Virus record (IMG/VR): IMGVR_UViG_3300021963_000023
Location: 187,150-251,149 of that record
Reading direction: 5' to 3' (one strand)
Length of the DNA stretch: 64,000 nt
Shown here: piece by piece, positions 2,529 to 64,000 of the stretch
Position numbering within the stretch: position 1 is the first letter of the stretch
Layout: each line of letters begins with the position of its first letter
Translations under genes and position numbers: made by a program
Notes under the pieces: model-generated
Told to the model about the DNA's origin: nothing
Database searches by the model: none
The model's input: only the letters and a program-made list of their open reading frames with translations

Positions 2529-4775
2529 ATGGCACAAATAATTAAACAGAGAAGAGGTAGTATAACCCAATTAAAGGATGTTACAGCCAGAATTAGTGAG
2601 CTTGTTGTTGCAACTGGATCAATTGGTAACCTAAACGGACCATTCCTTTTTGTTGGAGAAACAGAAGGTGTAGCCGGCGCATATAGACCAATTTCTAAGA
2701 TTTATCAGGGATCAGCGGCACCAACGATCACAGTCGGTTCATACGGTTCGATATTAGATGGTACACCCTTCTATGCATCTGCTAATAAATCATTATACAT
2801 ACTTAGTCAAGCCGGTAATTCTAGAATGGATTTTACTGGTAACATTGAAGGTAACACAATATCTAATGTTACTATTACCTCTTTAACAGGTAGTAACGCA
2901 AATTATACAAACCTAACAGGAACAACACTTACAAGTACAAATGGTAATATCACATCGCTTACTGGTAGTAACGCAGTTGTTACAAATATAACGGGAACCA
3001 CAATAACAGGTTCGAATGTACGGGTAACAAACGATTTAAATGTTGGTGGAAAAGTAACCGTAACTGGAGATATTTCTGGATCTAATTTAAATTTAACAGG
3101 AAACGCAACAATTGATGGTGATATAGTTTTAAAGGGTAATATTAGTATTGGTAACCAAACAACAGATTTAGTTACATTTGGTGCTGACGTTAGTTCTTCA
3201 ATTTTACCAGATGTACACAATGCATTCGATTTAGGTTCTTCAGAAAAAAATTGGAGAAACTTACACGTAAGTGGAACCGGGTATATTCAAACATTACAAG
3301 TAAATCAAGTAACTGTTACAAATATAGATGTTACAGGAGATTTAAGAGTTAGTGGTAGTACATTTTTAGGTAATGGTGGAGATAGTACAGTTATTAGTGG
3401 TTCAGTATACAATGACCAATTAACCGATAACAGAGTTCTTATTGTTGGGCCAAATGGTAGAATAGAAGATAGTCAATATTTCACATTTGATGATGTAACA
3501 TTAAAAGTTGGTACTGGAGGTGGAAATTTTGAGGTTGGTACTGCCGCTGGTGACGTTAGAACTTCAGGTTCATTATTAGTTAAAAGTGGTACAACTATAA
3601 CAGGTTCCTTAAACGTAACCGGTTCGGTTAATTTAAAGGGTAACACAACGGTAACAGGTTCATTAGATGTTACGGGTTCTGCAAATGTAGTAGGCCCGGT
3701 TGATGTTAAGGGTGATACAAAATTAACTGGTTCTTTAAATGTTAGTGGTTCTGCAAATGTAGTAGGTCCGGTCGATATTAAAGGGGACACAAAAATGACT
3801 GGTTCATTAAATGTAACCAACATCAAGGGTACAGGTTCGGTTTATTTACAACCCAACCAAGCCGACGCAAGATATTTTGAAATTTATAACACAGCAGCAA
3901 GTGGTGACGTACACATTAAATCTAATCAGGGATTAAGTTTCTTTGGTGATGATACCAATTATTTATTAATTAATGATGGCGCACAAACAGCAACAATTGT
4001 TGGTGTAAACGGTGTATTTGTTAGTTCTTCATTAACTGTAACTGGTTCTTTAAATGTTAGTGGTTCACAAACAATATCAAATAATTTAAATGTTTCAGGT
4101 AGTGCGTCTGTAACAGGAGCATTCACAGTAGGTTCAGGATCAATGACAAGTTTAGGTGGTGACTTATATGTGTCAGGTAACCTACAAGTTTTAGGTTCAT
4201 CAACAAGTGTTAATATCCAATCACAAACGGTTGAATTGGATGATAACATCATTAGATTAAACGCTTATTCACCATTCCAAAGTTATGCTGGATTTGAAGT
4301 TATGGATTCAGGATCATCAGGTGTTTCGGCTTCAATGCTTTGGGATTCACAAAATGATTATTGGATAGTAACAAATCAAAATGGTTCAGGTAGTAAATTT
4401 GTAGGTACAACGTTCGGAGCACAAGGTTCTGAAGTTAATTTAACAAGTGGAACATTCCCAATTGCAACATCAAACAATACAATTGGTGATAGTTTATTAA
4501 CAGATAATGCAACAACATTAAGTTATAATACCAATAAATTTCAAGTAACAGCATCAGATGGTGCTACTTTAATTGCGGGTAACGTAACCGTAAGTTCTGC
4601 TGGCGGTTCAGATTCAGGAACTAAGACTTCTAGAGTGGTTTTCAGAAACTCATCTAACGTTTTAGGTTATGTTTCAGCAACTGAATCAACAGATGTTCTT
4701 GATGGAATTTTAGGATATAAAAATTCAGACGGGGCTCTTAAGTTCTCAACTCTAATTGACGGAGGAACGTACTAA
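2529..4775 (+). CDS. Tail fibre-like protein
   Basis: MAQIIKQRRG N-terminus like Mtd_N-type fibre starts; 6-residue VTGSLN periodicity; C-terminal IDGGTY. Confidence 0.65.
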   Translation: MAQIIKQRRGSITQLKDVTARISELVVATGSIGNLNGPFLFVGETEGVAGAYRPISKIYQGSAAPTITVGSYGSILDGTPFYASANKSLYILSQAGNSRMDFTGNIEGNTISNVTITSLTGSNANYTNLTGTTLTSTNGNITSLTGSNAVVTNITGTTITGSNVRVTNDLNVGGKVTVTGDISGSNLNLTGNATIDGDIVLKGNISIGNQTTDLVTFGADVSSSILPDVHNAFDLGSSEKNWRNLHVSGTGYIQTLQVNQVTVTNIDVTGDLRVSGSTFLGNGGDSTVISGSVYNDQLTDNRVLIVGPNGRIEDSQYFTFDDVTLKVGTGGGNFEVGTAAGDVRTSGSLLVKSGTTITGSLNVTGSVNLKGNTTVTGSLDVTGSANVVGPVDVKGDTKLTGSLNVSGSANVVGPVDIKGDTKMTGSLNVTNIKGTGSVYLQPNQADARYFEIYNTAASGDVHIKSNQGLSFFGDDTNYLLINDGAQTATIVGVNGVFVSSSLTVTGSLNVSGSQTISNNLNVSGSASVTGAFTVGSGSMTSLGGDLYVSGNLQVLGSSTSVNIQSQTVELDDNIIRLNAYSPFQSYAGFEVMDSGSSGVSASMLWDSQNDYWIVTNQNGSGSKFVGTTFGAQGSEVNLTSGTFPIATSNNTIGDSLLTDNATTLSYNTNKFQVTASDGATLIAGNVTVSSAGGSDSGTKTSRVVFRNSSNVLGYVSATESTDVLDGILGYKNSDGALKFSTLIDGGTY

Positions 4776-51969: not shown

Positions 51970-53109
51970 ATGTTAAGAGAAAATGTAGAAGTTAGTGGGT
52001 CCTTAAATGTTAGTGGACAATATATTATACCAAGAGGGCCACGAGCAAATAGGCCATCTAGTCCTGATATTGGATCATTATATTTGGAAGAATCTACTAG
52101 TGGTAGTTTTGTTGTAACATACACAGCCTCATCAAATTATGACGATGGGTGGGAACCTGTCGGTTCGCAAAACACAGATAGAACTGGGTTCAAATATAGA
52201 CAGGTTATTAATTACTCATACTTAGCTGGTGGTTATAAATCCGCATCACCATGGAAGAACGTTCATAGAACAACCAATTCAACAGATCAAACGGTTCACT
52301 TAGGGGAATTATTGGATTACCCCGCATCATATACCTCCGGAGCGTGTAGTAAAAGTATTTTATTTCTTTGGTCAACAAATACCGATGGAGCATTTAAAGG
52401 AGATAATACTATTCATTCAACTTGGACCAGTGGTGTTAATATGGTAAATGAAACATCATATGCACACCAATCAAAATGGGATTTGGCAAATGCGAGAGAT
52501 GACTGTGGTACTTTACATCAAGAAACAGAATTTGCTTGGATATTTGGTGCTGGGGTTGCTGCAGTTGAGAAGTTCAATTTAACAAACGAAACAATGTATA
52601 GTGTTTATTACCAAGCGGGTGTCCCATACATTACAACAACATCATCAATCACGGGTAGTGGCCCTTCTGGTGCATCAGGATTTTCAGATGAGAATTATGG
52701 TTATGGATGGACACAACAAAGTGGTACAAAACTATTCTTCGCAAATGATACATTCACAAATAATCAGCAGTGGGGTGCGAGTGGTCAACAAAAAGGTATT
52801 AGTTCAAAGGTGGGTAAAGGTTATGCGGGAAATGAAGGAACATATAATGGGGGTTATAATTTAAGAAGATGGAATGTTTTTACTGAAACTAATTTAGGTA
52901 ATGTTTCAAAACCTCACGGTAACTGTGGTGAAGAAAACTTTACAATGGGACAAGATCATCAATATATGTTAGGTTGTTATGACGGTGCACAGGTAAATAC
53001 TAGTTGGAAATTTGGTTACACTACGGATACTGGTACAGTAAACCCTAGTGGTTTGGCGCCAGGAGTAAATGGTGGAACATCATCAGGTCATTGCGGTTGG
53101 AGAACATAA
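51970..53109 (+). CDS. Virion-associated beta-rich protein, paralogue 1 of 3
   Basis: Fibre-like N-terminus (EVSGSL, GSLYLEE), YLAGGY, NCGEEN, ends GTSSGHCGWRT. Confidence 0.6.
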   Translation: MLRENVEVSGSLNVSGQYIIPRGPRANRPSSPDIGSLYLEESTSGSFVVTYTASSNYDDGWEPVGSQNTDRTGFKYRQVINYSYLAGGYKSASPWKNVHRTTNSTDQTVHLGELLDYPASYTSGACSKSILFLWSTNTDGAFKGDNTIHSTWTSGVNMVNETSYAHQSKWDLANARDDCGTLHQETEFAWIFGAGVAAVEKFNLTNETMYSVYYQAGVPYITTTSSITGSGPSGASGFSDENYGYGWTQQSGTKLFFANDTFTNNQQWGASGQQKGISSKVGKGYAGNEGTYNGGYNLRRWNVFTETNLGNVSKPHGNCGEENFTMGQDHQYMLGCYDGAQVNTSWKFGYTTDTGTVNPSGLAPGVNGGTSSGHCGWRT

Positions 53110-53127
53110 AATTTATATTTATAAGAT

Positions 53128-54234
53128 ATGCTACACGAAAATATTGAAATTAGTGGGTCCCTAAAAGCACAAGGCGTGATAAAATCACCAATTGGAACAC
53201 GGGCAAATAGACCGAGCAGTCCACAAACTGGTTCACTTTATCTAGAACAGGCAACTAGTGGTAGTTTTTTAATGGTTTATATTGGTGTAAGTAACAACGA
53301 TAGTGGTTGGGTTAGAGTATCGTCTCAGGTAAATGCTAATGTTGGGTTTAAATTCAGACAAATTATTAACTATTCATACCTAGCCGGTGGATATAAAGAT
53401 TCATCACCATGGAAGAATGTTCATAGAACAATAAATGCAACGGATCAAACAACACATTTAGGTGAGTTGTTGGACTATCCAGCATCATACACATCTGGAG
53501 CTTGTAGTAGGTATATCTTATTTATATGGTCAGTCAATACGGATAATGTGTGGAAATCTGCATCAGATATACACGGAACAACAACCGCGGCGGTTAATAT
53601 GACCAATGAAACAAAGTACGCACATAATGTAAAGTTTAATATAACAAACATAAGGTCAGATTGTGGTACCATGCATAAAGAAACCGCCACCGCCTACATT
53701 TTTAGTGGAGGTAATGCAACCGTTGAAAAATTCGATTTGAATACAGAAACAATTGCCACCGGTTTTAATTTAACAACAATAACCGGTAACGATGGTGGTA
53801 GTGCATTCTCCGATGAAAATTTTGGATATGGATGGACAAGTAGTGAAGGTGTTAAAATGAGTTTTGCAACAGAAACATTCAGCTCAAGTGGAATGTGGGG
53901 AAACCACTCACAACAAAAAGGAATTAGTTCAAAAGTTGGTAAGGGTTACGCGGGTGCCGATGGTTCTTATAATGGTGGATATGCTTTAAGAAGATGGAGC
54001 AACGCTAACGATACTAATATTGGTAACGTTGCTAAACCACATGGCAACTGTGGAGAAGAAAATTTTACAATGGGGCAAGATCATCAATACATGTTAGGTA
54101 ATTATGATGGTGCACAAAATAATACAAGTTGGAAATTTAGTTACACAACAGACACAGGAACAGTAAACCCTAGTGGTTTAGCTCCTGGTGTTAATGGTGG
54201 AACGTCATCCGGACATTGTGGATGGAGAGGATAA
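53128..54234 (+). CDS. Virion-associated beta-rich protein, paralogue 2 of 3
   Basis: Same motifs; TATTTATA at 53116-23; ends GHCGWRG. Confidence 0.6.
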   Translation: MLHENIEISGSLKAQGVIKSPIGTRANRPSSPQTGSLYLEQATSGSFLMVYIGVSNNDSGWVRVSSQVNANVGFKFRQIINYSYLAGGYKDSSPWKNVHRTINATDQTTHLGELLDYPASYTSGACSRYILFIWSVNTDNVWKSASDIHGTTTAAVNMTNETKYAHNVKFNITNIRSDCGTMHKETATAYIFSGGNATVEKFDLNTETIATGFNLTTITGNDGGSAFSDENFGYGWTSSEGVKMSFATETFSSSGMWGNHSQQKGISSKVGKGYAGADGSYNGGYALRRWSNANDTNIGNVAKPHGNCGEENFTMGQDHQYMLGNYDGAQNNTSWKFSYTTDTGTVNPSGLAPGVNGGTSSGHCGWRG

Positions 54235-54247
54235 AACTAATTAAAAT

Positions 54248-55357
54248 ATGATATACGAGAATTTAGAAATTAGTGGAAGTTTAACATCAGATCGTGTAGT
54301 TAATAGACCACCTAAAGGCGTTAGAGCAAGTAGACCTGGTTCACCATTATCTGGTTCTTTATATTTGGAAGAATCTACTAGTGGTAGCTTTTTAATGTTA
54401 TATACCGGAGTATCAAATATTGATAACGGATGGGAAAGAATTGCAGCACAAGAAACCATCCCAATAGCATTTAAATATAGACAAGTTTTATCATATTCGT
54501 ACTTAGCCGGTGGTTATAAAGATTCATCACCGTGGAGAAACGTACATAAAACAACAAACTCAACGAATCAAACAACACACGTTGGTGAATTATTAGATTA
54601 TCCAGCGTCTTATACATCCGGTGCTTGTAATAAAACAATATTGTTTATTTGGTCAGTAAATGATGATGGGGCATGGAAAGGTCCAGATAGTATTCATGGG
54701 ACTCGGACATCAGCAATTAATTTGTTTAACGATACAAACTATGCTCATCAAGCTAAATTTAACACAGGTATTGCTAGAAGTGACGTTGCCACTATGCAAA
54801 AAGAAACGGAGTTCGCCTATCTAATTTCAGGTGGATCGACAACCATTGAAAAATTTAATCTATCTAACGAAAGTTATGTAAGTGGATTTGGTGTAACGTC
54901 AATAAATGGTAATGATGGTGGAGCCGCATTCTTTGACGAAAGTTTTGGATATGCTTGGACAAATAGTGGAGGTATCAAGTTTAATTTTTCAAATGAAACT
55001 CCCTCATCGTCAACACAATGGGGAGCACACGCTCAACAAAAAGGAATTAGTTCTAAGGTTGGAAAAGGATATGCGGGGAATGAAGGTTCATATAATGGGG
55101 GTTACAACTTAAGAAGATGGAGTAACTCTACCGATACAAATATTGGTAATGTTGCAAAGCCACATGCCAACTGTGGTGAAGAAAACTTCGCATTAGGACA
55201 AGACTGGCAATATATGTTAGGAAATTATGATGGAACAGGACAAAACAATACGTCTTGGATAATGGTTTATGCAACCGACACAGGTTCAAATGCCATTACG
55301 GGATTAGCACCACGGGTTAACGCTGGGACATCATCTGGACATTGTGGTTGGAGATAA
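54248..55357 (+). CDS. Virion-associated beta-rich protein, paralogue 3 of 3
   Basis: Same motifs; ends GHCGWR. Confidence 0.6.
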   Translation: MIYENLEISGSLTSDRVVNRPPKGVRASRPGSPLSGSLYLEESTSGSFLMLYTGVSNIDNGWERIAAQETIPIAFKYRQVLSYSYLAGGYKDSSPWRNVHKTTNSTNQTTHVGELLDYPASYTSGACNKTILFIWSVNDDGAWKGPDSIHGTRTSAINLFNDTNYAHQAKFNTGIARSDVATMQKETEFAYLISGGSTTIEKFNLSNESYVSGFGVTSINGNDGGAAFFDESFGYAWTNSGGIKFNFSNETPSSSTQWGAHAQQKGISSKVGKGYAGNEGSYNGGYNLRRWSNSTDTNIGNVAKPHANCGEENFALGQDWQYMLGNYDGTGQNNTSWIMVYATDTGSNAITGLAPRVNAGTSSGHCGWR

Positions 55358-56173: not shown

Positions 56174-56913
56174 TGACACATATTCTTTTTAAAGTACAGG
56201 GAGACGTTCCAGGTTACATACAAGTAGTTGGGATGTATTTAAATTACAATTATGGTAGAATTGCTGACGAGTACAACGATATGAGAGTTGAGTTGAATAA
56301 ACTTGGGGCAATAGTTATACCAGAAATTGTGGCTAAAGGCTTTGTTTTTGCTGACATATATAAAGATTATATTAGCGTTAGAACAAACTCGCATATTATG
56401 GACGAAATTCCTCAGTTAGCCGAATCTAGTGAGTCTGAAGAAGAAAAAGTAAAATATTTTCTTAATGAGGATGACAAACTATCAGCTGTACTTTTTAATA
56501 AAGCTGCAATGAGAAAAGTTGTTGCTGATAGATTTTCAGAAAGATATAAAGAGTTAATGGTTGATGCTTCTATACTAGAAAAAGATACTTGGGAAGAACA
56601 GAAAAGAGAAGCGTTTGGTTGGACAGCTGACGAAGATTATCAAACTCCGATCATAGATATTTTATGTGCGGGTAGAAATATAGATAAAACATTATTTGTA
56701 CAAAAGATAATTAACAATGTTACAGCATATAATGTTAAATTAGCAAATCTATTATTAGAACAACAACTATTAGAAGAAAGAATTAAGGCGTGTGTAAACA
56801 TCGCAGATTGCCACAGACTTAAGCACGAAAAATTTGGTGTTGCATTGAGCAAACAACAAAGGGAAGATGAAAATATTCCAACAACACCTCTCACATTGAA
56901 AATGGATTTTTAA
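56173..56913 (+). CDS. Hypothetical protein, resembles tail-fibre assembly-type helical domain
   Basis: E..TW..Q..EA..W...TP....L...R pattern. Confidence 0.45.
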   Translation: MTHILFKVQGDVPGYIQVVGMYLNYNYGRIADEYNDMRVELNKLGAIVIPEIVAKGFVFADIYKDYISVRTNSHIMDEIPQLAESSESEEEKVKYFLNEDDKLSAVLFNKAAMRKVVADRFSERYKELMVDASILEKDTWEEQKREAFGWTADEDYQTPIIDILCAGRNIDKTLFVQKIINNVTAYNVKLANLLLEQQLLEERIKACVNIADCHRLKHEKFGVALSKQQREDENIPTTPLTLKMDF

Positions 56914-57914
56914 TGAATTTAGCTATTAACGGGACGTGTGCCAAAGGATGCTCATTTTGTTTCACAAAAGAAGACGCAAGACTAAAACACACACTCGGAG
57001 AAATGGATATAAACATGGTCGATAAAGTTATCGACCATTTTCATCTAAACAACTCCAACGAAGAAATCACAATACTCGGAGGTGAACCAACACAACATTC
57101 TAATTTTATTGGGATAATGGATCACATTTTCTCTAGAGGTTATAAGGTAAATCTAGTTAGTAATTTTCTTTTTGGTAAAACAACCAGAGATTATATTATA
57201 GATAATATTAAAAACATTAGATGGGCCTTTCCTAATGCCGCGGAACTCAATGAGAAAAACCGAATGGTTGTTTTTAAAAAGAACTATTTAGAAATCTATA
57301 AGGCTTATGCTAACACATGGGGATTCGATAACCACCCAAGATTATATTTGGCACTAACAATGTCAAGTGATTGGAAAGATAGAAATTTTTATGAATATAT
57401 CAAATGGTTATACCACGAGTTAGATGGTAATATAAACGCCATAAGACTAGGTTTAGACCTTACTGGAACATATCTTATCAACAATAAAGAGATGGGCGTT
57501 GAGATGACCAAAATACTTAAATTTGGACGTTATAATGAGATTAAAATAACATCAGATTGTCAAGTTCCGCCATGTCTTTGGGAGGGTAAAACAAAAGGGG
57601 CTGTGATGGAAAATTCATTAAACTTTGCTACGTTTAAAATACCTGAATATGAAACAATATGTGGGTTTATGCCATTGGATATATTCCCAGATGGTAGTTC
57701 TATTCATTGTTATCCATTAGAAGATAAAGTAAAGATCAATAATGTTTTGGAAATATCGGGAGAAAATGGTATATTAGGTCTTAGAGAAGAGTTCGATAAA
57801 CTTTATATAGAAAACCATAAAAATTATTCAATACCACAAGGATGTTTAGATTGTGTTTTTTACAAGACAGAATGTAATGGAATTTGTGGTGGTTGTTTAG
57901 AGGGAACCAAATGA
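56913..57914 (+). CDS. Radical SAM protein with C-terminal SPASM-like Cys cluster
   Basis: CAKGCSFC, LGGEP, C-terminal CLDC..C..ICGGC. Confidence 0.85.
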   Translation: MNLAINGTCAKGCSFCFTKEDARLKHTLGEMDINMVDKVIDHFHLNNSNEEITILGGEPTQHSNFIGIMDHIFSRGYKVNLVSNFLFGKTTRDYIIDNIKNIRWAFPNAAELNEKNRMVVFKKNYLEIYKAYANTWGFDNHPRLYLALTMSSDWKDRNFYEYIKWLYHELDGNINAIRLGLDLTGTYLINNKEMGVEMTKILKFGRYNEIKITSDCQVPPCLWEGKTKGAVMENSLNFATFKIPEYETICGFMPLDIFPDGSSIHCYPLEDKVKINNVLEISGENGILGLREEFDKLYIENHKNYSIPQGCLDCVFYKTECNGICGGCLEGTK

Positions 57915-58951
57915 CAAATAAAATATTTTCAATACCGTTTAATCCGATGCTATCGGAAGAAGTATTCTTGAAAGAGTTCTACCCATTCCTGGAAAGGAAC
58001 AAGGAATCAATCTATGACATTTATTTTACCTGTAGAATACCACCTTTCACACAAGATGCGATGGGTGCTATCTTTAGAGAAGAGGATAGAGACATTGTGT
58101 TTGAAAACGCAATGATTATACAAAAGGCTTTAGGTATTAGAATTAGTGCAACGTTCAATAATATTAATGTTTCTCCAAAATATGAGAACTATAAATTGTT
58201 TGTTGATAATTTAAAACCATTATATGAAAAGGGATTAAGGTGTATAACTATTCCTCATGGTCATTGGGTTGCAATGGGATTGAAGAAACATTTTCCAGAG
58301 ATGGAAATTAAAAATACCATATTAAGAAAAGTTGCAACCGGTCAGGACTTTTGGTACAATGCTGATCAGGGATTTGATTATATTAATCTCGATAGAATTT
58401 TAATGAGAGATATTGAGGAGCTTAAAAACATTAAGCGTGCCCAATTAAGATATTACGAAGAGAAGGGTAGGTATGTTAAACTATCACTCTTGGTTAACGA
58501 GGGTTGTTTAGGTAGATGCCCAGTAATGGATGAACACTATTCATATAATAACCTTAGGCAACCTAATGAACTACCATATTTTCATCATGAGATATCTAAA
58601 GTAACATGTGAATACAAATGGGAAAAAGAGATCAATGCATTCTTTTTTAAAGCCGCAACAATACCACCATTCAAAGAAGAGTTTGACGAATTGCTAGAAT
58701 ATATCGATGTCTTTAAAATGCATGGTAGAGATAGCTTTAATCGTTTAAATGAAACAATAGAGATTGTGGATTCATATGTTGCAGGTAATGAAATTTTATC
58801 TGAAACATCAAATCTTTATCTTGATGGTATACCACACGAAGAATTAAAAGGTTGGAGAAATAAAATAAAGAAATGTAAATTTCAATGTTGGGATTGTAAC
58901 TATTGTGATGTAGTTGCTGACCACAAAAAGAAATCATATGGACTTAGTTAA
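57911..58951 (+). CDS. Peptidase U32-family (Fe-S hydroxylase-like) protein
   Basis: LLVNEGCLGRC, FKMHGR, C-terminal CKFQCWDCNYC. ATG 57911 overlaps the upstream stop. Confidence 0.7.
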   Translation: MTNKIFSIPFNPMLSEEVFLKEFYPFLERNKESIYDIYFTCRIPPFTQDAMGAIFREEDRDIVFENAMIIQKALGIRISATFNNINVSPKYENYKLFVDNLKPLYEKGLRCITIPHGHWVAMGLKKHFPEMEIKNTILRKVATGQDFWYNADQGFDYINLDRILMRDIEELKNIKRAQLRYYEEKGRYVKLSLLVNEGCLGRCPVMDEHYSYNNLRQPNELPYFHHEISKVTCEYKWEKEINAFFFKAATIPPFKEEFDELLEYIDVFKMHGRDSFNRLNETIEIVDSYVAGNEILSETSNLYLDGIPHEELKGWRNKIKKCKFQCWDCNYCDVVADHKKKSYGLS

Positions 58952-59603
58952 ACATATTGACGATTCAATTGAATGGGGTAAACTAGAGGTATCTAAATTA
59001 ACACAAGACATTTTAGATATTCATGGGATTACAAGTAATAAAGTGAGATCATTTCTTAATAACATATGTAGTCTGGATAACGCAACTTATCTTGAGGTTG
59101 GTGTGTTCAGGGGTGCCACATTTTGTTCTGCGATATATGGTAATGATATTAAATCAATTGCAATTGATAATTTTATGTCACCTAATTTAACACCAAAAGG
59201 TGTTAGTCAGAAGTTAGGTAACTATTACAAACATAATATTGATATTTTACCACAAGAAGAATTTTTGCATAATGTAAAACGATTTGGTAATGTGAATAAC
59301 ATATCAGTATATAAAACTGATTACCAAACATTTGATTTTAAAACGCTACCACATGTTGACATTATTTTTTATGATGGTGAAACAAAATATCATGATCAAT
59401 ATGTTGCATTAACAAACATGTTACCAATTTTTTCTAAAGAAACCATAGTCATTATGGATGATTGGAATTGGAACAGTGGTGCTTTCGATAAATTCATTGA
59501 AGATAATAATTTAATGATAACATATTACAAGGAGTTAATCACATCTGGTGAAGACTCAAAGGATTTTTGGAATGGTCTTGGGGTATTTTTAATTGAGAGA
59601 TAG
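58938..59603 (+). CDS. Class I SAM methyltransferase
   Basis: YLEVGVFRGAT, AIDNF, FYDG, IMDDWNW. Confidence 0.75.
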   Translation: MDLVKHIDDSIEWGKLEVSKLTQDILDIHGITSNKVRSFLNNICSLDNATYLEVGVFRGATFCSAIYGNDIKSIAIDNFMSPNLTPKGVSQKLGNYYKHNIDILPQEEFLHNVKRFGNVNNISVYKTDYQTFDFKTLPHVDIIFYDGETKYHDQYVALTNMLPIFSKETIVIMDDWNWNSGAFDKFIEDNNLMITYYKELITSGEDSKDFWNGLGVFLIER

Positions 59604-59632
59604 TTGATTATGTGATATTTTTTGTTTATATT
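59604..59632 (+). promoter_or_regulatory. sigma70-like promoter TTGATT-N17-TATATT upstream of tRNA
   Basis: -35 at 59604-09, -10 at 59627-32, 17 nt before the tRNA 5' end. Confidence 0.65.
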
Positions 59633-59649
59633 AATAATAATAATTGTAA

Positions 59650-59739
59650 GGGGAGGTGGGTGAGTGGTTTAAACCGACAGCCTCCGAAGCTGCTATTGGA
59701 CTTAACATTCAATCGAGAGTCCGAATCTCTTCCTCCCCG
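59650..59739 (+). tRNA. tRNA with CCG anticodon (nominally Arg) on a type II, Ser-like body
   Basis: Acceptor GGGGAGG/CCTCCCC, discriminator G; D arm GGT-GAGTGGTTTAA-ACC; anticodon arm CAGC-CTCCGAA-GCTG; variable stem ATTGGA/TTCAAT; T arm GAGAG-TCCGAAT-CTCTT; CCA not encoded. Confidence 0.85.
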
Positions 59740-59772
59740 CAATTTTATAAACTTTTCTTAAACAAAAACAAA

Positions 59773-60657
59773 ATGAGAAAAACAATCACAATGCTATCGC
59801 TAATGTTAGCATTTTTGTTTATTACTAGATTGTCATATGGTCAGTATAGTAGTAGTGCAATTCAGAAAGGTTCAGAACAATCCTTAAAAGTTCAAACGGA
59901 CACAGTCCCTAATCAATTACAAGAAATTGTTGTTACAGCAAAGAAGGTACCTTTAATGACCAAGGTAGGCCCTTATGGTCAACCACTTTGGACAACAATG
60001 AGAATGTTTGCATCCACTAGAGTTTATGTGATGAACCCACCAGGTACCGCAATGTACGAGAAGTGGTTTGACATTAGACAAAGAAGAAACGGACCGGCAC
60101 AAATTAGAATGAGAGATGAATTCACATTCGGTTTAGGTAAGAGGCTTCAGTTGGATTTATATTCCCACACGGTTTATGACGGTAAAGATGGGGATAAACA
60201 ATTCAAATGGAGAGGTTTTTCTTGGGAGTTTCGTTATGCTCTTGCTGATTGGGGTAAATTATGGGGTAATCCAACTCTATATTGGGAAACAAAAATGTTA
60301 AATGGTCGCTGGGGTATTGAACCAAAGTTATTACTCGGTGATAGAATCGGTAAAAGTGGTATCTGGGGTTTCAATGCTATCTACGAAGGTAATCTAGCAG
60401 ATAAAAAAGAACTCCGTGAAGATGAATATGCGTATACCGCATCATATGCAAACATAATCAATAATGATTTGACATTAGGGGTTTCTCACATGTTTAGGTA
60501 TAACGACTTCGATGGTGGATCACAAGAATGGTACCTTGGGCCACTTTTACAATATCGTTTTAATAACAAAGGTTATTTGAATATTGAGCATATGCCAGGT
60601 TTAAACCAAGACGCAAAACAATCAAGAACCACAATTATATTCGCATGGAGATTCTAA
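59773..60657 (+). CDS. Outer-membrane beta-barrel protein with signal peptide and TonB-box-like motif
   Basis: MRKTITMLSLMLAFLF signal peptide, LQEIVVTA, alternating aromatic strands, terminal AWRF. The track start at 59656 lies inside the tRNA and is rejected. Confidence 0.7.
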   Translation: MRKTITMLSLMLAFLFITRLSYGQYSSSAIQKGSEQSLKVQTDTVPNQLQEIVVTAKKVPLMTKVGPYGQPLWTTMRMFASTRVYVMNPPGTAMYEKWFDIRQRRNGPAQIRMRDEFTFGLGKRLQLDLYSHTVYDGKDGDKQFKWRGFSWEFRYALADWGKLWGNPTLYWETKMLNGRWGIEPKLLLGDRIGKSGIWGFNAIYEGNLADKKELREDEYAYTASYANIINNDLTLGVSHMFRYNDFDGGSQEWYLGPLLQYRFNNKGYLNIEHMPGLNQDAKQSRTTIIFAWRF

Positions 60658-61652
60658 TCAACGGACAAGTATTCCTTGTCTATTTAATATTCATTATGTT
60701 CGTAACAGGTATCCTCAAAGAAAGAGGATACCTTATGGACATCTTTAGATTACTGGAACAAAGAGTTAAGTCAAAGAGAACGGTGGTATTCTTAGTATCA
60801 CTATTTGGTGGGATCTTACCAATCCCTGGACGAGTTGCATTATCAGCATCTATGTTAAACAGCATAGCACCAGTTGATAATAAGAAACGTAAGAAGTTTG
60901 GTATCATTGACTACCTAGCAACACATCACTATTATCTATGGTCACCTTTAGAGAAAACTGTTATTATTCCAATGGCTGTGTTAAGTTTAACCTATATGCA
61001 ATTCATGTCATATATCTGGCCATTACTTTTAATCTCAGCGTTATATATTACTTATTATATCTTATCATTAAAAGATGATGAAATAGATATTGAAGTTAAA
61101 GATGAACCAATTAATATGCAAAACATAACGATGGTGGTTATACCATTTTTAGTAACCATATTAATGTGTGTGTTTTTTACTGAATACTATTTTGGTTTCT
61201 TCACAGGATTCACAATATGGTTAGTATATTACTCTAAAAGCTGGAGTAAAATATTGAGCTATATCGACTGGGAACTAATATGGATCGTTGCTTTGGTTAT
61301 TATTTTAGGTAACCTTGTTGGATCTTACTATACACAGATAGAAGCTATAATAAAACAGTACAGTGAACCATCTAACATATTGATTGTCTCTGTGTTAGGT
61401 TTTTTAGCTTCATTTTTATTAGGTTCTTCAGCAAAATATGCTGGAATTGTTAGTTTATTAACTAGTGTATTTGGAATGCATTATTTTGTTCTATTCTTTA
61501 CTTTAGAATATTCAGCATACCTAATTTCACCATCACATAAGTGTTTACCTATTGGCCAAAGGTATTTTCATACTGGGTTTCTAACATATCTAAAAGCATT
61601 AATAATTTGGATATCAATGATGATAACTTATGCAATATTTACAGTTCTGTAA
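60645..61652 (+). CDS. Multi-pass inner-membrane transporter (DUF401/ion-transporter-like)
   Basis: About 9-10 hydrophobic segments, GILPIPG, SPSHKCL. Confidence 0.65.
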   Translation: MEILINGQVFLVYLIFIMFVTGILKERGYLMDIFRLLEQRVKSKRTVVFLVSLFGGILPIPGRVALSASMLNSIAPVDNKKRKKFGIIDYLATHHYYLWSPLEKTVIIPMAVLSLTYMQFMSYIWPLLLISALYITYYILSLKDDEIDIEVKDEPINMQNITMVVIPFLVTILMCVFFTEYYFGFFTGFTIWLVYYSKSWSKILSYIDWELIWIVALVIILGNLVGSYYTQIEAIIKQYSEPSNILIVSVLGFLASFLLGSSAKYAGIVSLLTSVFGMHYFVLFFTLEYSAYLISPSHKCLPIGQRYFHTGFLTYLKALIIWISMMITYAIFTVL

Positions 61653-61654
61653 GG

Positions 61655-61683
61655 TTGACTTTTTGAAAAATAAAATATATATT
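61655..61683 (+). promoter_or_regulatory. sigma70-like promoter TTGACT-N17-TATATT
   Basis: -35 at 61655-60, -10 at 61678-83. Confidence 0.75.
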
Positions 61684-61704
61684 ATAAAAGAAAATTAAAA
61701 ATTT

Positions 61705-62184
61705 ATGGAAAAAATCACATTAAAATTAGGAGACGTTCTACAATTAGAAAGTGAAATAAACGGGTATATTGAACCACAAACTGGAGAACAGGTGTTCGAG
61801 GGATTCAGTAAACAAAACCTTTCAATAATTTTGAAATACGAATTGAGTGACTTCTCAACGGAACTTAAAGGTGAGAGAACTAAGGTTGAGGCGTTAAGAG
61901 ATGAATTAATCAAAAAGTATGGAGAAGAAGATGGTAATGGCGGTGTCTTAGTAAAAATGTACAATGAAGTTAAGGACGATGAAGGTAACGTAACTGGTAA
62001 AGTTGTTAACCCTCAATACATCGAATTTGATAATGAATATGGTGTACTTTTAAATCAAGAAATTGAAATTGAATACCCTGAAATTACAAAAGAAGATTTA
62101 AAGGATGCAGGTAAAACGAAAGACAAATATCAGGTGTTATTTAAACTGATCAAAAAGGAAGTAAAAAAAGAAGGAGCTAATTAA
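61705..62184 (+). CDS. Hypothetical acidic phage protein
   Basis: 159 aa, LIKKYG motif; has its own promoter and terminator. Confidence 0.65.
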   Translation: MEKITLKLGDVLQLESEINGYIEPQTGEQVFEGFSKQNLSIILKYELSDFSTELKGERTKVEALRDELIKKYGEEDGNGGVLVKMYNEVKDDEGNVTGKVVNPQYIEFDNEYGVLLNQEIEIEYPEITKEDLKDAGKTKDKYQVLFKLIKKEVKKEGAN

Positions 62185-62195
62185 GCTCCTTTTTT
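62163..62195. terminator. Bidirectional intrinsic terminator between convergent genes
   Basis: A-tract, AAGGAGCT-AATTA-AGCTCCTT, T-tract; both stop codons fall in or next to the loop. Confidence 0.8.
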
Positions 62196-63026
62196 GTGTT
62201 CATTAATATAATCTGATAGATTAATGATTGGATACCAATTCAATACAAATTTAGCTAAATTACTTTCACATAAAGTTTCCTGAGCTTCACCTGGTTTATC
62301 ATCAAAATATAATCGATCTTGCTTAAACATATCCGCAACTTCATTTAACGAAAAGTTTTCACCTCTACCTAGTTCAAAAATATGCCCCCAAGCATTTCTT
62401 TCTTGTATCTTAATTAATCCATTAACAATATCGTCAATGTGTGTAAAATCTCTCCTCTTGGAACCGTCGCCATATATTGTTAAAGGTTCACCATCATCAT
62501 ATTGTTTTTCCCACCTACCAATCACAGTACTATAACCGCCATCCCTTAAATGATATGGGCCGTATACATTATAAAAACGAGTAATAGAAGCATTTAATTT
62601 AAAATGATCCTGATAAAGTTTAATAATCTCCTCACCAATATCTTTACTGAATGTGTATGGATTTTTAAACTTACCGCTATGGTGTGAACTACTTCCAGCA
62701 TAAACTAATGGTATATTATTGTTAACACAATACTGTGCTATGTTTAATGTACCATTTGTGTTTGTTTCAAAATATTCTACTGGCTGTTCAAATGATGGTT
62801 GTATTCTAGCTATTGCAGCTAAATGATAAACCATATCAAACTTCACATCATGCAAAATACTTAAATCTTTAACGTCACCAAATATATAATTTGCACCATC
62901 TTGATGATTAGTTATATATCCACTTAAATAGTTATCAATTGATGTGACACCATGTCCATCTTTCAATAATCTCTTAATCAAATTGGTGCCAACAAATCCA
63001 GCACCGCCAGTTACAAGTATATTCAT
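62181..63026 (-). CDS. NAD-dependent nucleotide-sugar epimerase/dehydratase
   Basis: ILVTGGAGFVG, HLAA, YxxxK (YTFSK), RFYNVYGP, RDFTHIDD. Confidence 0.9.
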   Translation of the reverse strand: MNILVTGGAGFVGTNLIKRLLKDGHGVTSIDNYLSGYITNHQDGANYIFGDVKDLSILHDVKFDMVYHLAAIARIQPSFEQPVEYFETNTNGTLNIAQYCVNNNIPLVYAGSSSHHSGKFKNPYTFSKDIGEEIIKLYQDHFKLNASITRFYNVYGPYHLRDGGYSTVIGRWEKQYDDGEPLTIYGDGSKRRDFTHIDDIVNGLIKIQERNAWGHIFELGRGENFSLNEVADMFKQDRLYFDDKPGEAQETLCESNLAKFVLNWYPIINLSDYINEHKKGA

Positions 63027-64000
63027 TAAATTATCTTTTTAATATCAATCATCATATTACCAATTTGATACTCTCCTGGTTCATAATGAGGGATTGAAAG
63101 TCTTAGTTTTTTAAGTGTTTCTAGATCCTGTTCATCAAATGGGCTGGTTTCATAAATCATCACGTCAACGTCCTCTGTAAGGATAAATTTCGATCTTAAA
63201 TCATATTTGGTATTCTTCTGTTCATTCTCTATATAGTCCTCAGGAATGAGCCCTAAATTAATTTTATCAAAGAATGGTTCTATCTGTAATAAATAAGCTC
63301 TACTTTTAGTGGTTAATCCCATATTGAATGTTTTATATTTGAAGTCATTATCCTCCCAATACCTGATCTCACTAAACGCTGAGATGGGTAACCCCCATTT
63401 TCTTATGAAGTTTCTGTTTGATGACACTTCAATTAATTGTCTATTATTCTTCATATCATCACTAAATCTAGATGTCTGAGAAACAAAATGATATGTAATG
63501 GCTGAATCACAAGTCTTTAGTTCATAGCCCTTTAATTTTGCTCTGATTAGGAAGTCATCATCTTCACAGAAGCATGGTACAAAACTAAACCCATCAAAGA
63601 ATCCAACATCCTCAAACATCTTTTTGTATCCAGACATAAAGAATACAGCACCATCAGATAACTTATCATTTTTATTCCATTGTTTAACATAGGTATTAAA
63701 ATTAAAGTCATCGAAATTATCGAATCCACTTCCAAGATCTAACAAGACCTTACCAGGTCTTTGGTGACCTCTGAATATTGGTGGCTCAATAGTGGTATAT
63801 GATAATAACATATTCGGTTGTAACAATCTTTCAATTGCTTCTAAGAATCCTTCACCAATAACCATATCATTATGTATCAAGACTAACTTATCGGTATCAA
63901 CTAATTTAATACCGGTATTATAGGTGTCAGAGAATGTTAATCTATCATCATCATGAATATAGGACACATTATTATCCACTAATGATGATAACCATTCCTT
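63026..64000 (-). CDS. GT2-family glycosyltransferase (5'-partial)
   Basis: LIHNDM, FCEDDDF..R, YHFVS; frame stays open to the window edge; ends KKII. Confidence 0.75.
   Translation of the reverse strand, partial: KEWLSSLVDNNVSYIHDDDRLTFSDTYNTGIKLVDTDKLVLIHNDMVIGEGFLEAIERLLQPNMLLSYTTIEPPIFRGHQRPGKVLLDLGSGFDNFDDFNFNTYVKQWNKNDKLSDGAVFFMSGYKKMFEDVGFFDGFSFVPCFCEDDDFLIRAKLKGYELKTCDSAITYHFVSQTSRFSDDMKNNRQLIEVSSNRNFIRKWGLPISAFSEIRYWEDNDFKYKTFNMGLTTKSRAYLLQIEPFFDKINLGLIPEDYIENEQKNTKYDLRSKFILTEDVDVMIYETSPFDEQDLETLKKLRLSIPHYEPGEYQIGNMMIDIKKII

Follow-up and report, generated by a model that had tools for sequence, protein, structure and literature searches.

Genetic-code change draws on natural tRNAs in which body and anticodon do not agree, of which very few examples are known. 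Among them, the tRNA-Ser(CAG) of CUG-clade yeasts and the nev-tRNAs of nematodes pair a class II (long-variable-arm) body with an anticodon that belongs to a different amino acid; charging follows the body, and codons are decoded ambiguously or in an altered way. These systems are eukaryotic, chromosomal and genome-wide, and the CUG codons of Candida have moved to serine positions. Here, we describe a phage-encoded tRNA that looks like a serine tRNA body bearing the arginine anticodon CCG, hereafter tRNA(CCG). It lies in the final 64 kb (the window, i.e. the whole stretch of DNA analysed) of one 251,149-bp virus record (IMG/VR IMGVR_UViG_3300021963_000023; 32 % GC). Unlike the CUG codons of Candida, the CGG codons that it would read have not moved to serine positions.

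The bldA tRNA-Leu(UUA) of Streptomyces is a lone tRNA for a nearly unused codon found in a small functional class of genes, the expression of which it gates. tRNA(CCG) is similarly a single tRNA for a nearly unused codon confined to a small gene class. bldA is a normal leucine tRNA, its amino acid is not in doubt and its regulatory role has been shown experimentally.

Allo-tRNAs combine the identity features of seryl-tRNA synthetase (SerRS), i.e. a long variable arm, with non-serine anticodons, including the arginine anticodon GCG and those for AGA and AGG; their acceptor/T-stem geometry is 8/4 or 9/3, they are found chiefly in Acidobacteria, Clostridia and Proteobacteria, in many cases next to toxin-antitoxin genes, and they inserted serine at sense and stop codons in Escherichia coli (Mukai et al. 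2017, PMC5389517). tRNA(CCG) likewise unites serine identity features with a non-serine anticodon; however, it has a canonical 7/5 tRNA-Ser body (7-bp acceptor stem, 5-bp T stem), is phage-borne and is tied to CGG codons in fibre genes. Nor does it resemble tRNA-Sec, which is defined by an 8/5 geometry, a 6-bp D stem and the anticodon UCA, as against 7/5, 3 bp and CCG here. Reassignment of CGG has been described in low-GC bacteria in which CGG accounts for <1-6 per 10,000 codons and a single dedicated tRNA(CCG) has a tryptophan or glutamine body (Shulgina and Eddy 2021, PMC8629427). The phage shares with these bacteria a low GC content, very rare CGG and a tRNA(CCG) body of another isotype. 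In the bacteria, however, CGG aligns with the new amino acid genome-wide, whereas here it aligns with arginine, the tRNA gene is a phage cassette that can be absent and CGG is restricted to a single gene class.

Ordinary phage tRNA-Arg(CCG) genes (e.g. L031:6536-6608 and L043:10583-10656) have the same anticodon and presumably supply CGG decoding, but they encode 71-73-nt class I tRNAs in large arrays, whereas tRNA(CCG) is a solitary, 90-nt class II molecule. Searches of the full-text literature did not turn up any account of a phage tRNA of this kind, and we know of no tRNA with mismatched body and anticodon in a phage together with the codons that it serves. What is new is a canonical serine body with a CCG anticodon on a mobile phage cassette, linked to CGG in host-recognition genes.

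Structure of tRNA(CCG)

ARAGORN detected a single tRNA in the window (59650-59740 on the (+) strand, anticodon CCG), and the Rfam tRNA model (RF00005) returned 50 bits (E=6e-10 on a 400-nt stretch; gathering score 29). Together with stem pairing across the two alleles described below, these results place the cloverleaf in the RF00005 class. The following features were assigned:

59650 to 59739, (+) strand: class II tRNA, anticodon CCG, allele A, 90 nt (ARAGORN, Rfam, isotype models; near-identical copies in 24+ viral contigs)
59684 to 59686, (+) strand: anticodon CCG within the loop CTCCGAA (ARAGORN; invariant in alleles A and B; the loop also occurs in Bacteroidota class I tRNA-Arg(CCG))
59695 to 59713, (+) strand: long variable arm, stem ATTGGA/TTCAAT with a 7-nt loop (stem base invariant and loop variable among relatives)
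59720 to 59726, (+) strand: T loop TCCGAAT, with C55 for the usual T55 (kept in both alleles)

The 7-bp acceptor stem (GGGGAGG/CCTCCCC) is followed by G73, and CCA is not encoded. The D stem has 3 bp with G13.A22, and the D loop, AGUGGUUUA, has U rather than A after G18G19. The anticodon stem is (A)CAGC/GCUG(C) with an A27.C43 mismatch, enclosing the loop CU-CCG-AA; the 19-nt variable arm, AUUGGA-CUUAACA-UUCAAU, forms six pairs, one of them G.U; and the T stem (GAGAG/CUCUU, 5 bp, with G49.U65) carries the loop UCCGAAU with C55. A previous reading of this DNA, made from the letters alone (the sequence-only reading), had described the CCG loop, 6-bp variable stem, G73, U at position 20 and TCCGAAT loop, all of which are present in the sequence and the ARAGORN fold.

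When the whole window was searched with the Rfam model in gathering mode, the tRNA at 59650-59739 was missed; it scored 50 bits only when the 400 nt were searched, so speed filters can hide long-arm tRNAs in AT-rich DNA.

Serine ancestry of the tRNA body

Homology shows that tRNA(CCG) descends from a bacterial tRNA-Ser, with Bacteroidota tRNA-Ser(GCU) as the nearest type. When the 90 nt were compared with 401 Bacteroidota genomes by BLAST, all of the top matches were tRNA-Ser (nine GCU and one GGA; 70-73 % identity, full length); these share its acceptor stem except pair 3-70, its D arm and its variable-arm layout, and their T arm is closely similar. A 21-nt stretch spanning the acceptor end and D arm recurs in two genuine phage tRNA-Ser genes and in 68 bacterial contigs, including 38 tRNA-Ser and 26 Dehalococcoidia tRNA-Tyr and no tRNA-Arg or tRNA-Leu. 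Among these D-arm-sharing matches, G73 was present in 36 of the 37 tRNA-Ser shown and A73 in all 26 tRNA-Tyr.

Isotype covariance models were built from sequences selected independently of any resemblance to the query (Ser, n=26; Arg, n=30; class II Leu, n=13). The window tRNA scored 63.5 bits on the Ser model and 26.5 on the Arg model, with no match to the Leu model; allele B scored 59.8, 24.2 and 22.4 bits, respectively. Held-out Bacteroidota tRNA-Ser gave 76-83 bits on Ser and 14-32 on Arg, and held-out tRNA-Arg(CCG) gave 22-28 on Ser and 74-79 on Arg. The Arg score of 26.5 falls in the range of true tRNA-Ser, and the molecule does not have an arginine profile. Its 19-nt variable arm differs from the short class I loop of tRNA-Arg; the 6-bp stem compares with 5-7 bp in the tRNA-Ser of our sample, 3-5 bp in tRNA-Leu and 3-4 bp in tRNA-Tyr, and the arm layout (44-45 unpaired, one unpaired base before C48) is as in true tRNA-Ser. 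G73 occurs in 44 of 48 class II tRNA-Ser of the sample, and A73 occurs in all tRNA-Leu and tRNA-Tyr.

The serine-type body proposed in the sequence-only reading is thus upheld by homology across the 401 genomes and by isotype scoring of the kind that it recommended (Ser 63.5 vs Arg 26.5 bits), but its suggestion of a re-purposed arginine tRNA has the ancestry reversed, as homology and the isotype models point to a re-purposed serine tRNA. A loose pattern search for host-type tRNA-Arg(CCG) returned mostly noise; the three clean Bacteroidota examples that we kept are 75-nt class I tRNAs with A20, A73 and the loop CUCCGAA, and in one of the three the stem-loop CAGC-CUCCGAA-GCUG is identical to that of tRNA(CCG). 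With this loop and stem-loop in common, the molecule looks like a serine body with an Arg(CCG)-type anticodon arm. We take its anticodon loop to have been rewritten to the CUCCGAA of the host-type arginine tRNA.

We rejected two other origins. An attP site or copy of a host tRNA is not indicated, as no class II CCG tRNA was found in the 68 D-arm-sharing bacterial contigs or the 401 Bacteroidota genomes, and the phage's own tRNA-Ser genes have different D arms.

Conservation and alleles

Probing IMG/VR with the 18-nt anticodon arm yielded 25 contigs, 24 of which carry the same tRNA in almost identical form within flanking DNA that is 66-99 % (mostly 70-93 %) identical; the other, L009, was discounted as a carrier on account of a chance 18-mer match within a coding region. 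An unbiased set of 61 relatives was recovered with the 294-aa protein encoded downstream, rather than the tRNA, as query. A class II tRNA is present at the same spot in 25 of these, always with CCG, and absent from the other 36. In total, at least 30 related viral contigs carry the tRNA, as two alleles with ~84 % identity. The anticodon is CCG in all 50+ copies and a serine anticodon (NGA or GCU) in none. The sequence-only reading had advised a search of related phages and had named a serine anticodon there as the finding that would overturn it; the search produced these at least 30 viral contigs, and the 25 tRNAs at this spot all read CCG.

Allele B (93 nt, ~84 % identical to allele A) was found in four of the 25 carriers of the neighbour-protein set and retains CCG, the anticodon loop in full, the T loop with C55, G73, G49.U65 and the long arm. 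Compensatory changes between the alleles turn pair 30-40 from G-C (A) to A-U (B) and pair 52-62 from A-U to G-C, while 27-43 is an A.C mismatch in A and G.U in B. Overall, 96.7 % of stem cells are paired across the two alleles; covariation statistics are weak, as there are only two lineages, but agree with the cloverleaf.

Pair-breaking changes in two copies, L003 and L018, may reflect decay or sequencing error. These copies, and the dispensability of the cassette in many relatives, are what an artefact or a decaying, functionless passenger would produce, but dozens of independent assemblies and sequencing runs agree on the gene, the diverged alleles differ by compensatory changes and presence is linked with codon use (see below), making this the most improbable of the explanations considered. 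Assembly error or a one-off mutation is ruled out by the agreement of many assemblies, sequencing runs and both alleles.

CGG codons in tail-fibre-like genes

CGG is the rarest arginine codon of the phage, accounting for 18 of 77,078 codons (0.7 % of arginine codons). DNA-level avoidance was rejected, as the trinucleotide occurs at its expected frequency when all frames are counted (2212 observed vs 2252 expected). Most of the codons fall in a single module:

2529 to 55357, (+) strand: tail-fibre-like module, a short distance upstream of the tRNA, containing 14 of the 18 CGG codons of the genome

These 14 codons start at 3021, 10219, 12942, 16680, 21263, 23610, 25071, 27764, 48471, 50247, 51591, 53200, 54704 and 55313. 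Per arginine codon, CGG is enriched in the module (14/503) vs elsewhere (4/1944; p=2.8e-7), and the other minor arginine codons display no such bias.

We compared codon use in 13 whole or partial genomes, of which eight have the tRNA (carriers) and five do not (non-carriers, including one that is 97 % complete); genes were called with a simple longest-open-reading-frame (ORF) rule, and most related records are fragments. CGG per 1000 arginine codons was 7.4-21.4 in carriers; among the five non-carriers, four had 1.6-2.7 and one had 7.8. The contrast is concentrated in homologues of the fibre module, where CGG makes up 76 of 2328 arginine codons in carriers vs 1 of 1490 in non-carriers (odds ratio 50, p=1e-15); each of the eight carriers, with either allele, has 5-19 module CGG codons and each of the five non-carriers has 0 or 1. 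Other conserved genes show no significant difference (6/4015 vs 2/2847), and ORFs without a homologue in the studied phage show a smaller one (48/3831 vs 17/3588, p=4e-4). The compared genomes are related and the carriers are not independent, such that these p-values overstate independence, a caution that counts against the serine reading developed below. Non-carriers G410, G417 and G418 nest among carriers on the adjacent-gene tree; therefore, the contrast is not one single split. The carriers' 130 CGG codons occupy 79 distinct sites.

A general GC or codon-usage shift of the fibre module was rejected: CGG is the only strongly shifted codon, the next odds ratios being 0.6 to 2.1, and GC content at third codon positions is equal (0.205 vs 0.208). 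Pure linkage to the tRNA was also rejected as the cause of the distribution. CGG density reaches 26-48 per 1000 arginine codons in the blocks of fibre-like genes (-60 to -40 kb and -20 to 0 kb), whereas only 3 of 803 arginine codons (3.7 per 1000) are CGG at 0-10 kb downstream of the tRNA; density does not simply fall with distance, and gene class therefore matters, not linkage alone. In contig L011, the tRNA directly follows fibre-like genes in which CGG makes up 4 of 42 arginine codons, vs 0 of 64 on its other side. The complete non-carrier G411 has a 23-tRNA array with the same arginine and serine isoacceptors and no CCG tRNA.

Four of the five non-carriers have 0.55-0.97 CGG per 10,000 codons, and the fifth, G418, has 2.7. 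This level matches that reported for bacteria without any CGG decoder (PMC8629427) and would fit a host that reads CGG poorly. tRNA(CCG) would decode a codon that these phages otherwise hardly use, allowing CGG to exist in the neighbouring tail-fibre genes at positions that are arginine in relatives; a tRNA working in translation and making CGG usable would be expected to give such a link. Close relatives with and without the cassette provide a natural comparison, with an ~50-fold change in codon use that is specific to one codon and one gene class.

The link with codon use also bears on two suggestions of the sequence-only reading, neither of which fared well. The first, a mistranslating or anti-host tRNA, supposes that serine carried by tRNA(CCG) enters host proteins at their CGG codons and poisons them, and that the phage itself avoids CGG. 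The serine-type body and the rarity of CGG in the phage (18/77,078 codons) are compatible with this idea, but it predicts a purge of CGG, whereas carriers have more CGG than non-carriers, ~50-fold more in fibre genes; the extra codons lie in the phage's own structural genes adjoining the tRNA and the cassette is often lost. We therefore regard an anti-host weapon as very unlikely. The second, a decoy for anticodon nucleases, belongs with other non-translational roles, such as a sponge for another tRNA-targeting defence or a serine donor for a tRNA-dependent transferase. Such roles predict no specific link with in-frame CGG codons, a FemAB-type transferase was not found in the phage record and the upstream genes are also present in tRNA-less relatives; we consider them unlikely, despite the unusual T loop (C55), the G49.U65 pair and neighbours of unknown function that include radical SAM and methyltransferase-like proteins.

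The fibre module has several further peculiarities. Fibre-like genes (window positions 1-55000 and related loci) contain long repeated segments within and between genes, suggesting frequent gene conversion, and the segment VQVDVMSTTNIA-R-LATTGSN occurs in three of them with CGG each time. At 51970-55357 (+), three tandem paralogues of ~370 aa share a conserved N-terminal GT-R-ANRP motif and are hypervariable at aa 153 and 356 (R, W, T, Y, Q, H, G, A, V), positions that are among those encoded by CGG.

Residues aligned with CGG

Against other carriers, the carriers' CGG codons align with CGG (141), other arginine codons (116), lysine (20), valine (12) and serine (1); against non-carriers, they align with arginine codons (100, of which 74 are AGA), CGG (2), glutamine (15), lysine (15), tyrosine (13), glycine (10) and serine (5). 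With CGG-to-CGG pairs left out, the 330 aligned sites contain 216 arginine codons and 6 serine codons. CGG therefore does not qualify as a sense codon reassigned to serine: the alignments are those of a codon that evolves as arginine, with no enrichment of serine. The sequence-only reading had reported three CGG-to-arginine alignments in the window and judged that there was no genome-wide reassignment; the alignments are confirmed and now extend genome-wide, and the judgement stands.

Charging and the residue inserted at CGG

The bacterial arginine determinants are A/G73, G2-C71, C3-G70, A20 (the main one), C35 and U/G36, and those of serine are G73, C72, G2-C71, R4-Y69, C11-G24, a large variable region and G30-C40, with serine identity independent of the anticodon (Giege and Eriani 2023, PMC9976931). 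All serine elements (G73, G2-C71, G4-C69 etc.) are present in tRNA(CCG) except C11-G24, and G30-C40 is present in allele A and lost in allele B, which has A30-U40. Pair 11-24 is G11-C24, as in genuine Bacteroidota tRNA-Ser(GCU) molecules with the same D arm. Four of the six arginine elements are present (G73, G2-C71, C35, G36). A20 is missing, as three pyrimidines separate G18G19 from A21 (UUU in allele A, UCU in allele B); the lack of this determinant of arginyl-tRNA synthetase (ArgRS), already remarked on in the sequence-only reading, is evident from U20 in the sequence, whereas the arginine tRNAs of the phage and of the host type have A20.

The existence of the tRNA, its conservation, serine ancestry and cassette structure, and its link with CGG codons are established by the data, and we infer its transcription, its charging and the inserted residue as follows. 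By the known identity rules, SerRS would charge tRNA(CCG) through the long variable arm, G73, G2-C71 and the Ser-type D arm, and ArgRS may add some arginine via C35, G36 and G73 despite the missing A20. CGG in fibre proteins would be read as serine or as a serine/arginine mixture, and such recoding would be limited to one gene class and to carrier phages, with no change of the genetic code. Charging by SerRS, alone or with ArgRS, is the outcome towards which we lean, tentatively, rating its chances as a little short of even. The absence of CGG from conserved enzymes and core genes and its near-absence from the genes just downstream of the tRNA fit a codon not fully equivalent to arginine and favour serine, because a fully synonymous codon should spread there.

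Several observations weigh against this reading. Relative to non-carriers, arginine is kept at 61 % of CGG sites vs 71 % of other arginine-codon sites in the same proteins (p=0.01; CGA sites also 61 %), and relative to carriers, it is kept at 84 % and 81 %, respectively. Serine codons should appear at CGG sites if serine were acceptable there, yet they are not enriched (3.0 vs 2.2 % against non-carriers; 0.3 vs 0.9 % against carriers). The persistence of CGG between carriers is approximately that of the minor arginine codon CGT, on which ground we also rejected special selection keeping CGG at a site. Finally, G3-C70 (3/54), C55 (2/54) and G49.U65 (2/54) are rare in tRNA-Ser and kept in both alleles, and could weaken binding by SerRS or EF-Tu; outside this gene, C55 is found in phage tRNAs of several isotypes and in a single bacterial tRNA-Ser. 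There is a conflict here: the body, the kept long arm and G73 predict serine, and codon evolution predicts arginine.

The same data bear on a tRNA that has switched identity, which host ArgRS would charge essentially only with arginine via C35, G36 and G73. It would be an ordinary codon-supply tRNA, rendering CGG readable as arginine in a host that decodes it poorly. The carriers' CGG codons align with arginine codons (AGA first) about as other arginine codons do, without serine enrichment, and the ~50-fold rise in CGG is found only where the tRNA is present, as such a switch would predict; however, truly synonymous CGG should also build up in core and linked downstream genes, which it does not, and other minor arginine codons are without gene-class bias. 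At the level of the molecule, four of six listed arginine determinants are present, one Bacteroidota tRNA-Arg(CCG) has exactly the same anticodon stem-loop, CAGC-CTCCGAA-GCTG, and G3-C70, C55 and G49.U65 may act as SerRS anti-determinants. Nevertheless, A20, the main bacterial ArgRS determinant, is absent here and present in the arginine tRNAs of the phage itself and of the host type, the long arm and G73 that drive anticodon-independent SerRS recognition are kept in both alleles, the Arg model score is no better than for true tRNA-Ser, and other phages encode normal class I tRNA-Arg(CCG), leaving the odd body without evident reason. On balance, a complete switch to arginine is possible but doubtful.

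The tRNA and its CGG codons could also constitute a phage-private codon system for host-recognition proteins, an extension that we put forward as a conceivable one on which we would not rely. In one form, ambiguous serine/arginine charging would diversify receptor binding, each fibre gene yielding a mixture of protein variants at CGG positions; in the other, CGG would act as a lock, with fibre genes translatable only where the cassette is present. Either form, if true, would constitute gene-class-restricted recoding on a mobile cassette.

If serine or a serine/arginine mixture is inserted, these phages would diversify or gate their host-recognition proteins during translation. If arginine is inserted, a bacterial ArgRS would accept a class II tRNA without A20, and SerRS would reject a near-perfect tRNA-Ser body. 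Either outcome would be unusual and would revise identity rules, and mismatches between isotype and anticodon in viral tRNAs should be read together with codon use in linked genes.

Locus organisation and the optional cassette

The tRNA gene is flanked as follows:

58914 to 59603, (+) strand: gene upstream of the tRNA, methyltransferase-like, corresponding to the C-terminal part of phrog_1458; tRNA-less relatives have it too
59617 to 59633, (+) strand: promoter-like element ATTTTTTGTTTATATTA, from flank alignment, common to tRNA-less relatives; putative promoter function
59773 to 60657, (+) strand: downstream gene, 294 aa, signal-peptide-like N terminus, no family match; query for the relative search

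The core motif of ATTTTTTGTTTATATTA has four copies in the genome, three of which lie 19-40 nt before a gene start; the fourth, at the tRNA, is separated from the next gene by 152 nt, owing to the tRNA in the interval. In tRNA-less relatives, the element is followed by ~10 nt and then by the leader of the next gene; the tRNA is therefore inserted behind that gene's promoter-like element. The sequence-only reading had credited the tRNA with its own promoter. This was not supported, as sigma-70-like hexamers upstream of the tRNA are not above chance (6 found vs 3.6 +/- 1.9 expected), leading us to reject an own sigma-70 promoter, and the conserved element ATTTTTTGTTTATATTA belongs to the next gene in tRNA-less relatives. 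The downstream gene (59773 to 60657) is probably co-transcribed with the tRNA, which would be made as the 5' part of that gene's transcript and then cut out. Metatranscriptome contigs from lake and river samples cover 59587-59945 and 59695-59933, comprising the tRNA and the beginning of the next gene, and the listed differences (40 of 380) all lie outside the tRNA; such support for transcription may include DNA carry-over, a further point against the serine reading.

tRNA(CCG) is encoded by an optional cassette and is best explained as a working gene of a clade of uncultured jumbo myophages. Forms with and without the tRNA occur together in one DNA metagenome, with joints 59602>59747 and 59633>59747 that skip 59603-59746 and 59634-59746, respectively. 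On the adjacent-gene tree, presence is scattered and the basal clades are without the tRNA; well-supported branches force at least three changes, and parsimony gives 6-8. In contig L011, the tRNA and its upstream element occur in a different gene order.

The overlapping ORFs at 57884-58951 and 58914-59603 (+) jointly match one 519-aa PHROG (phrog_1458), and the second has the methyltransferase domain, such that the pair is explained by a gene split, by a frameshift or by a two-gene form of a family that is otherwise fused. Auxiliary genes at 56913-57914 and 60645-63979 encode a radical SAM protein, a DUF401/citrate-transporter-like membrane protein and a nucleotide-sugar epimerase. At the DNA level, the region of the epimerase shares 69 % identity with Flavobacterium phage vB_FspM_immuto, in a match that includes a gene annotated 'pilin glycosylation protein'; modification of fibre or host glycans by the auxiliary genes near the tRNA is possible.

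Source phage and host type

The phage is a jumbo myophage with genes for a tail sheath, DNA polymerase and ribonucleotide reductase. No close cultured relative was found, the DNA polymerase being 26 % identical to that of Salinibacter phages, and naming the host through cultured relatives was dropped for this reason. A Shine-Dalgarno-like motif precedes 16 of 235 genes, which is under background, and gene leaders are A-rich at -13 to -10. Few Shine-Dalgarno motifs and A-rich leaders are the Bacteroidota pattern, from which we infer a Bacteroidota-type host.

The record also contains an array of ordinary tRNAs at 40-50 kb, plus a transfer-messenger RNA (tmRNA):

G000 C1:39720-40116, (-) strand, outside the window: tmRNA with the tag GNVYNNMEVAGLLATSNVAVA, adjoining the tRNA array
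G000 C1:45593-50489, (-) strand, outside the window: array of 21 tRNAs

Among the 21 are class I tRNA-Arg(ACG) and tRNA-Arg(UCU), each of which has A20 when read by eye, as well as tRNA-Ser(GCU) and tRNA-Ser(UGA). tRNA(CCG) is solitary, ~200 kb away. No gene for a SerRS-type enzyme, ArgRS, a CCA-adding enzyme or FemAB was found in the phage record, which is estimated to be 75 % complete, and a phage-encoded enzyme of these kinds was dropped as a candidate on that basis.

Other atypical phage tRNAs

Unusual tRNAs were also noted in unrelated phage arrays. L050:3750-3842 is a 93-nt tRNA-His(GTG) whose acceptor and variable stems have 8 and 9 bp, respectively, reminiscent of the 8/4 His tRNAs of Mukai et al., and L035:3334-3417 is an 84-nt tRNA-Asn(GTT) with a 3-bp variable stem. 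CTA-anticodon tRNAs at L043:11646-11720 and L050:8217-8291, labelled 'Pyl' by ARAGORN, are likely amber suppressors and hint at stop-codon recoding. Many Leu-anticodon tRNAs in the phage arrays L031, L035, L039, L045, L048, L049 and L050 are 74-78 nt long and lack the long variable arm expected of tRNA-Leu, forming a mirror image of the Ser-bodied tRNA(CCG).

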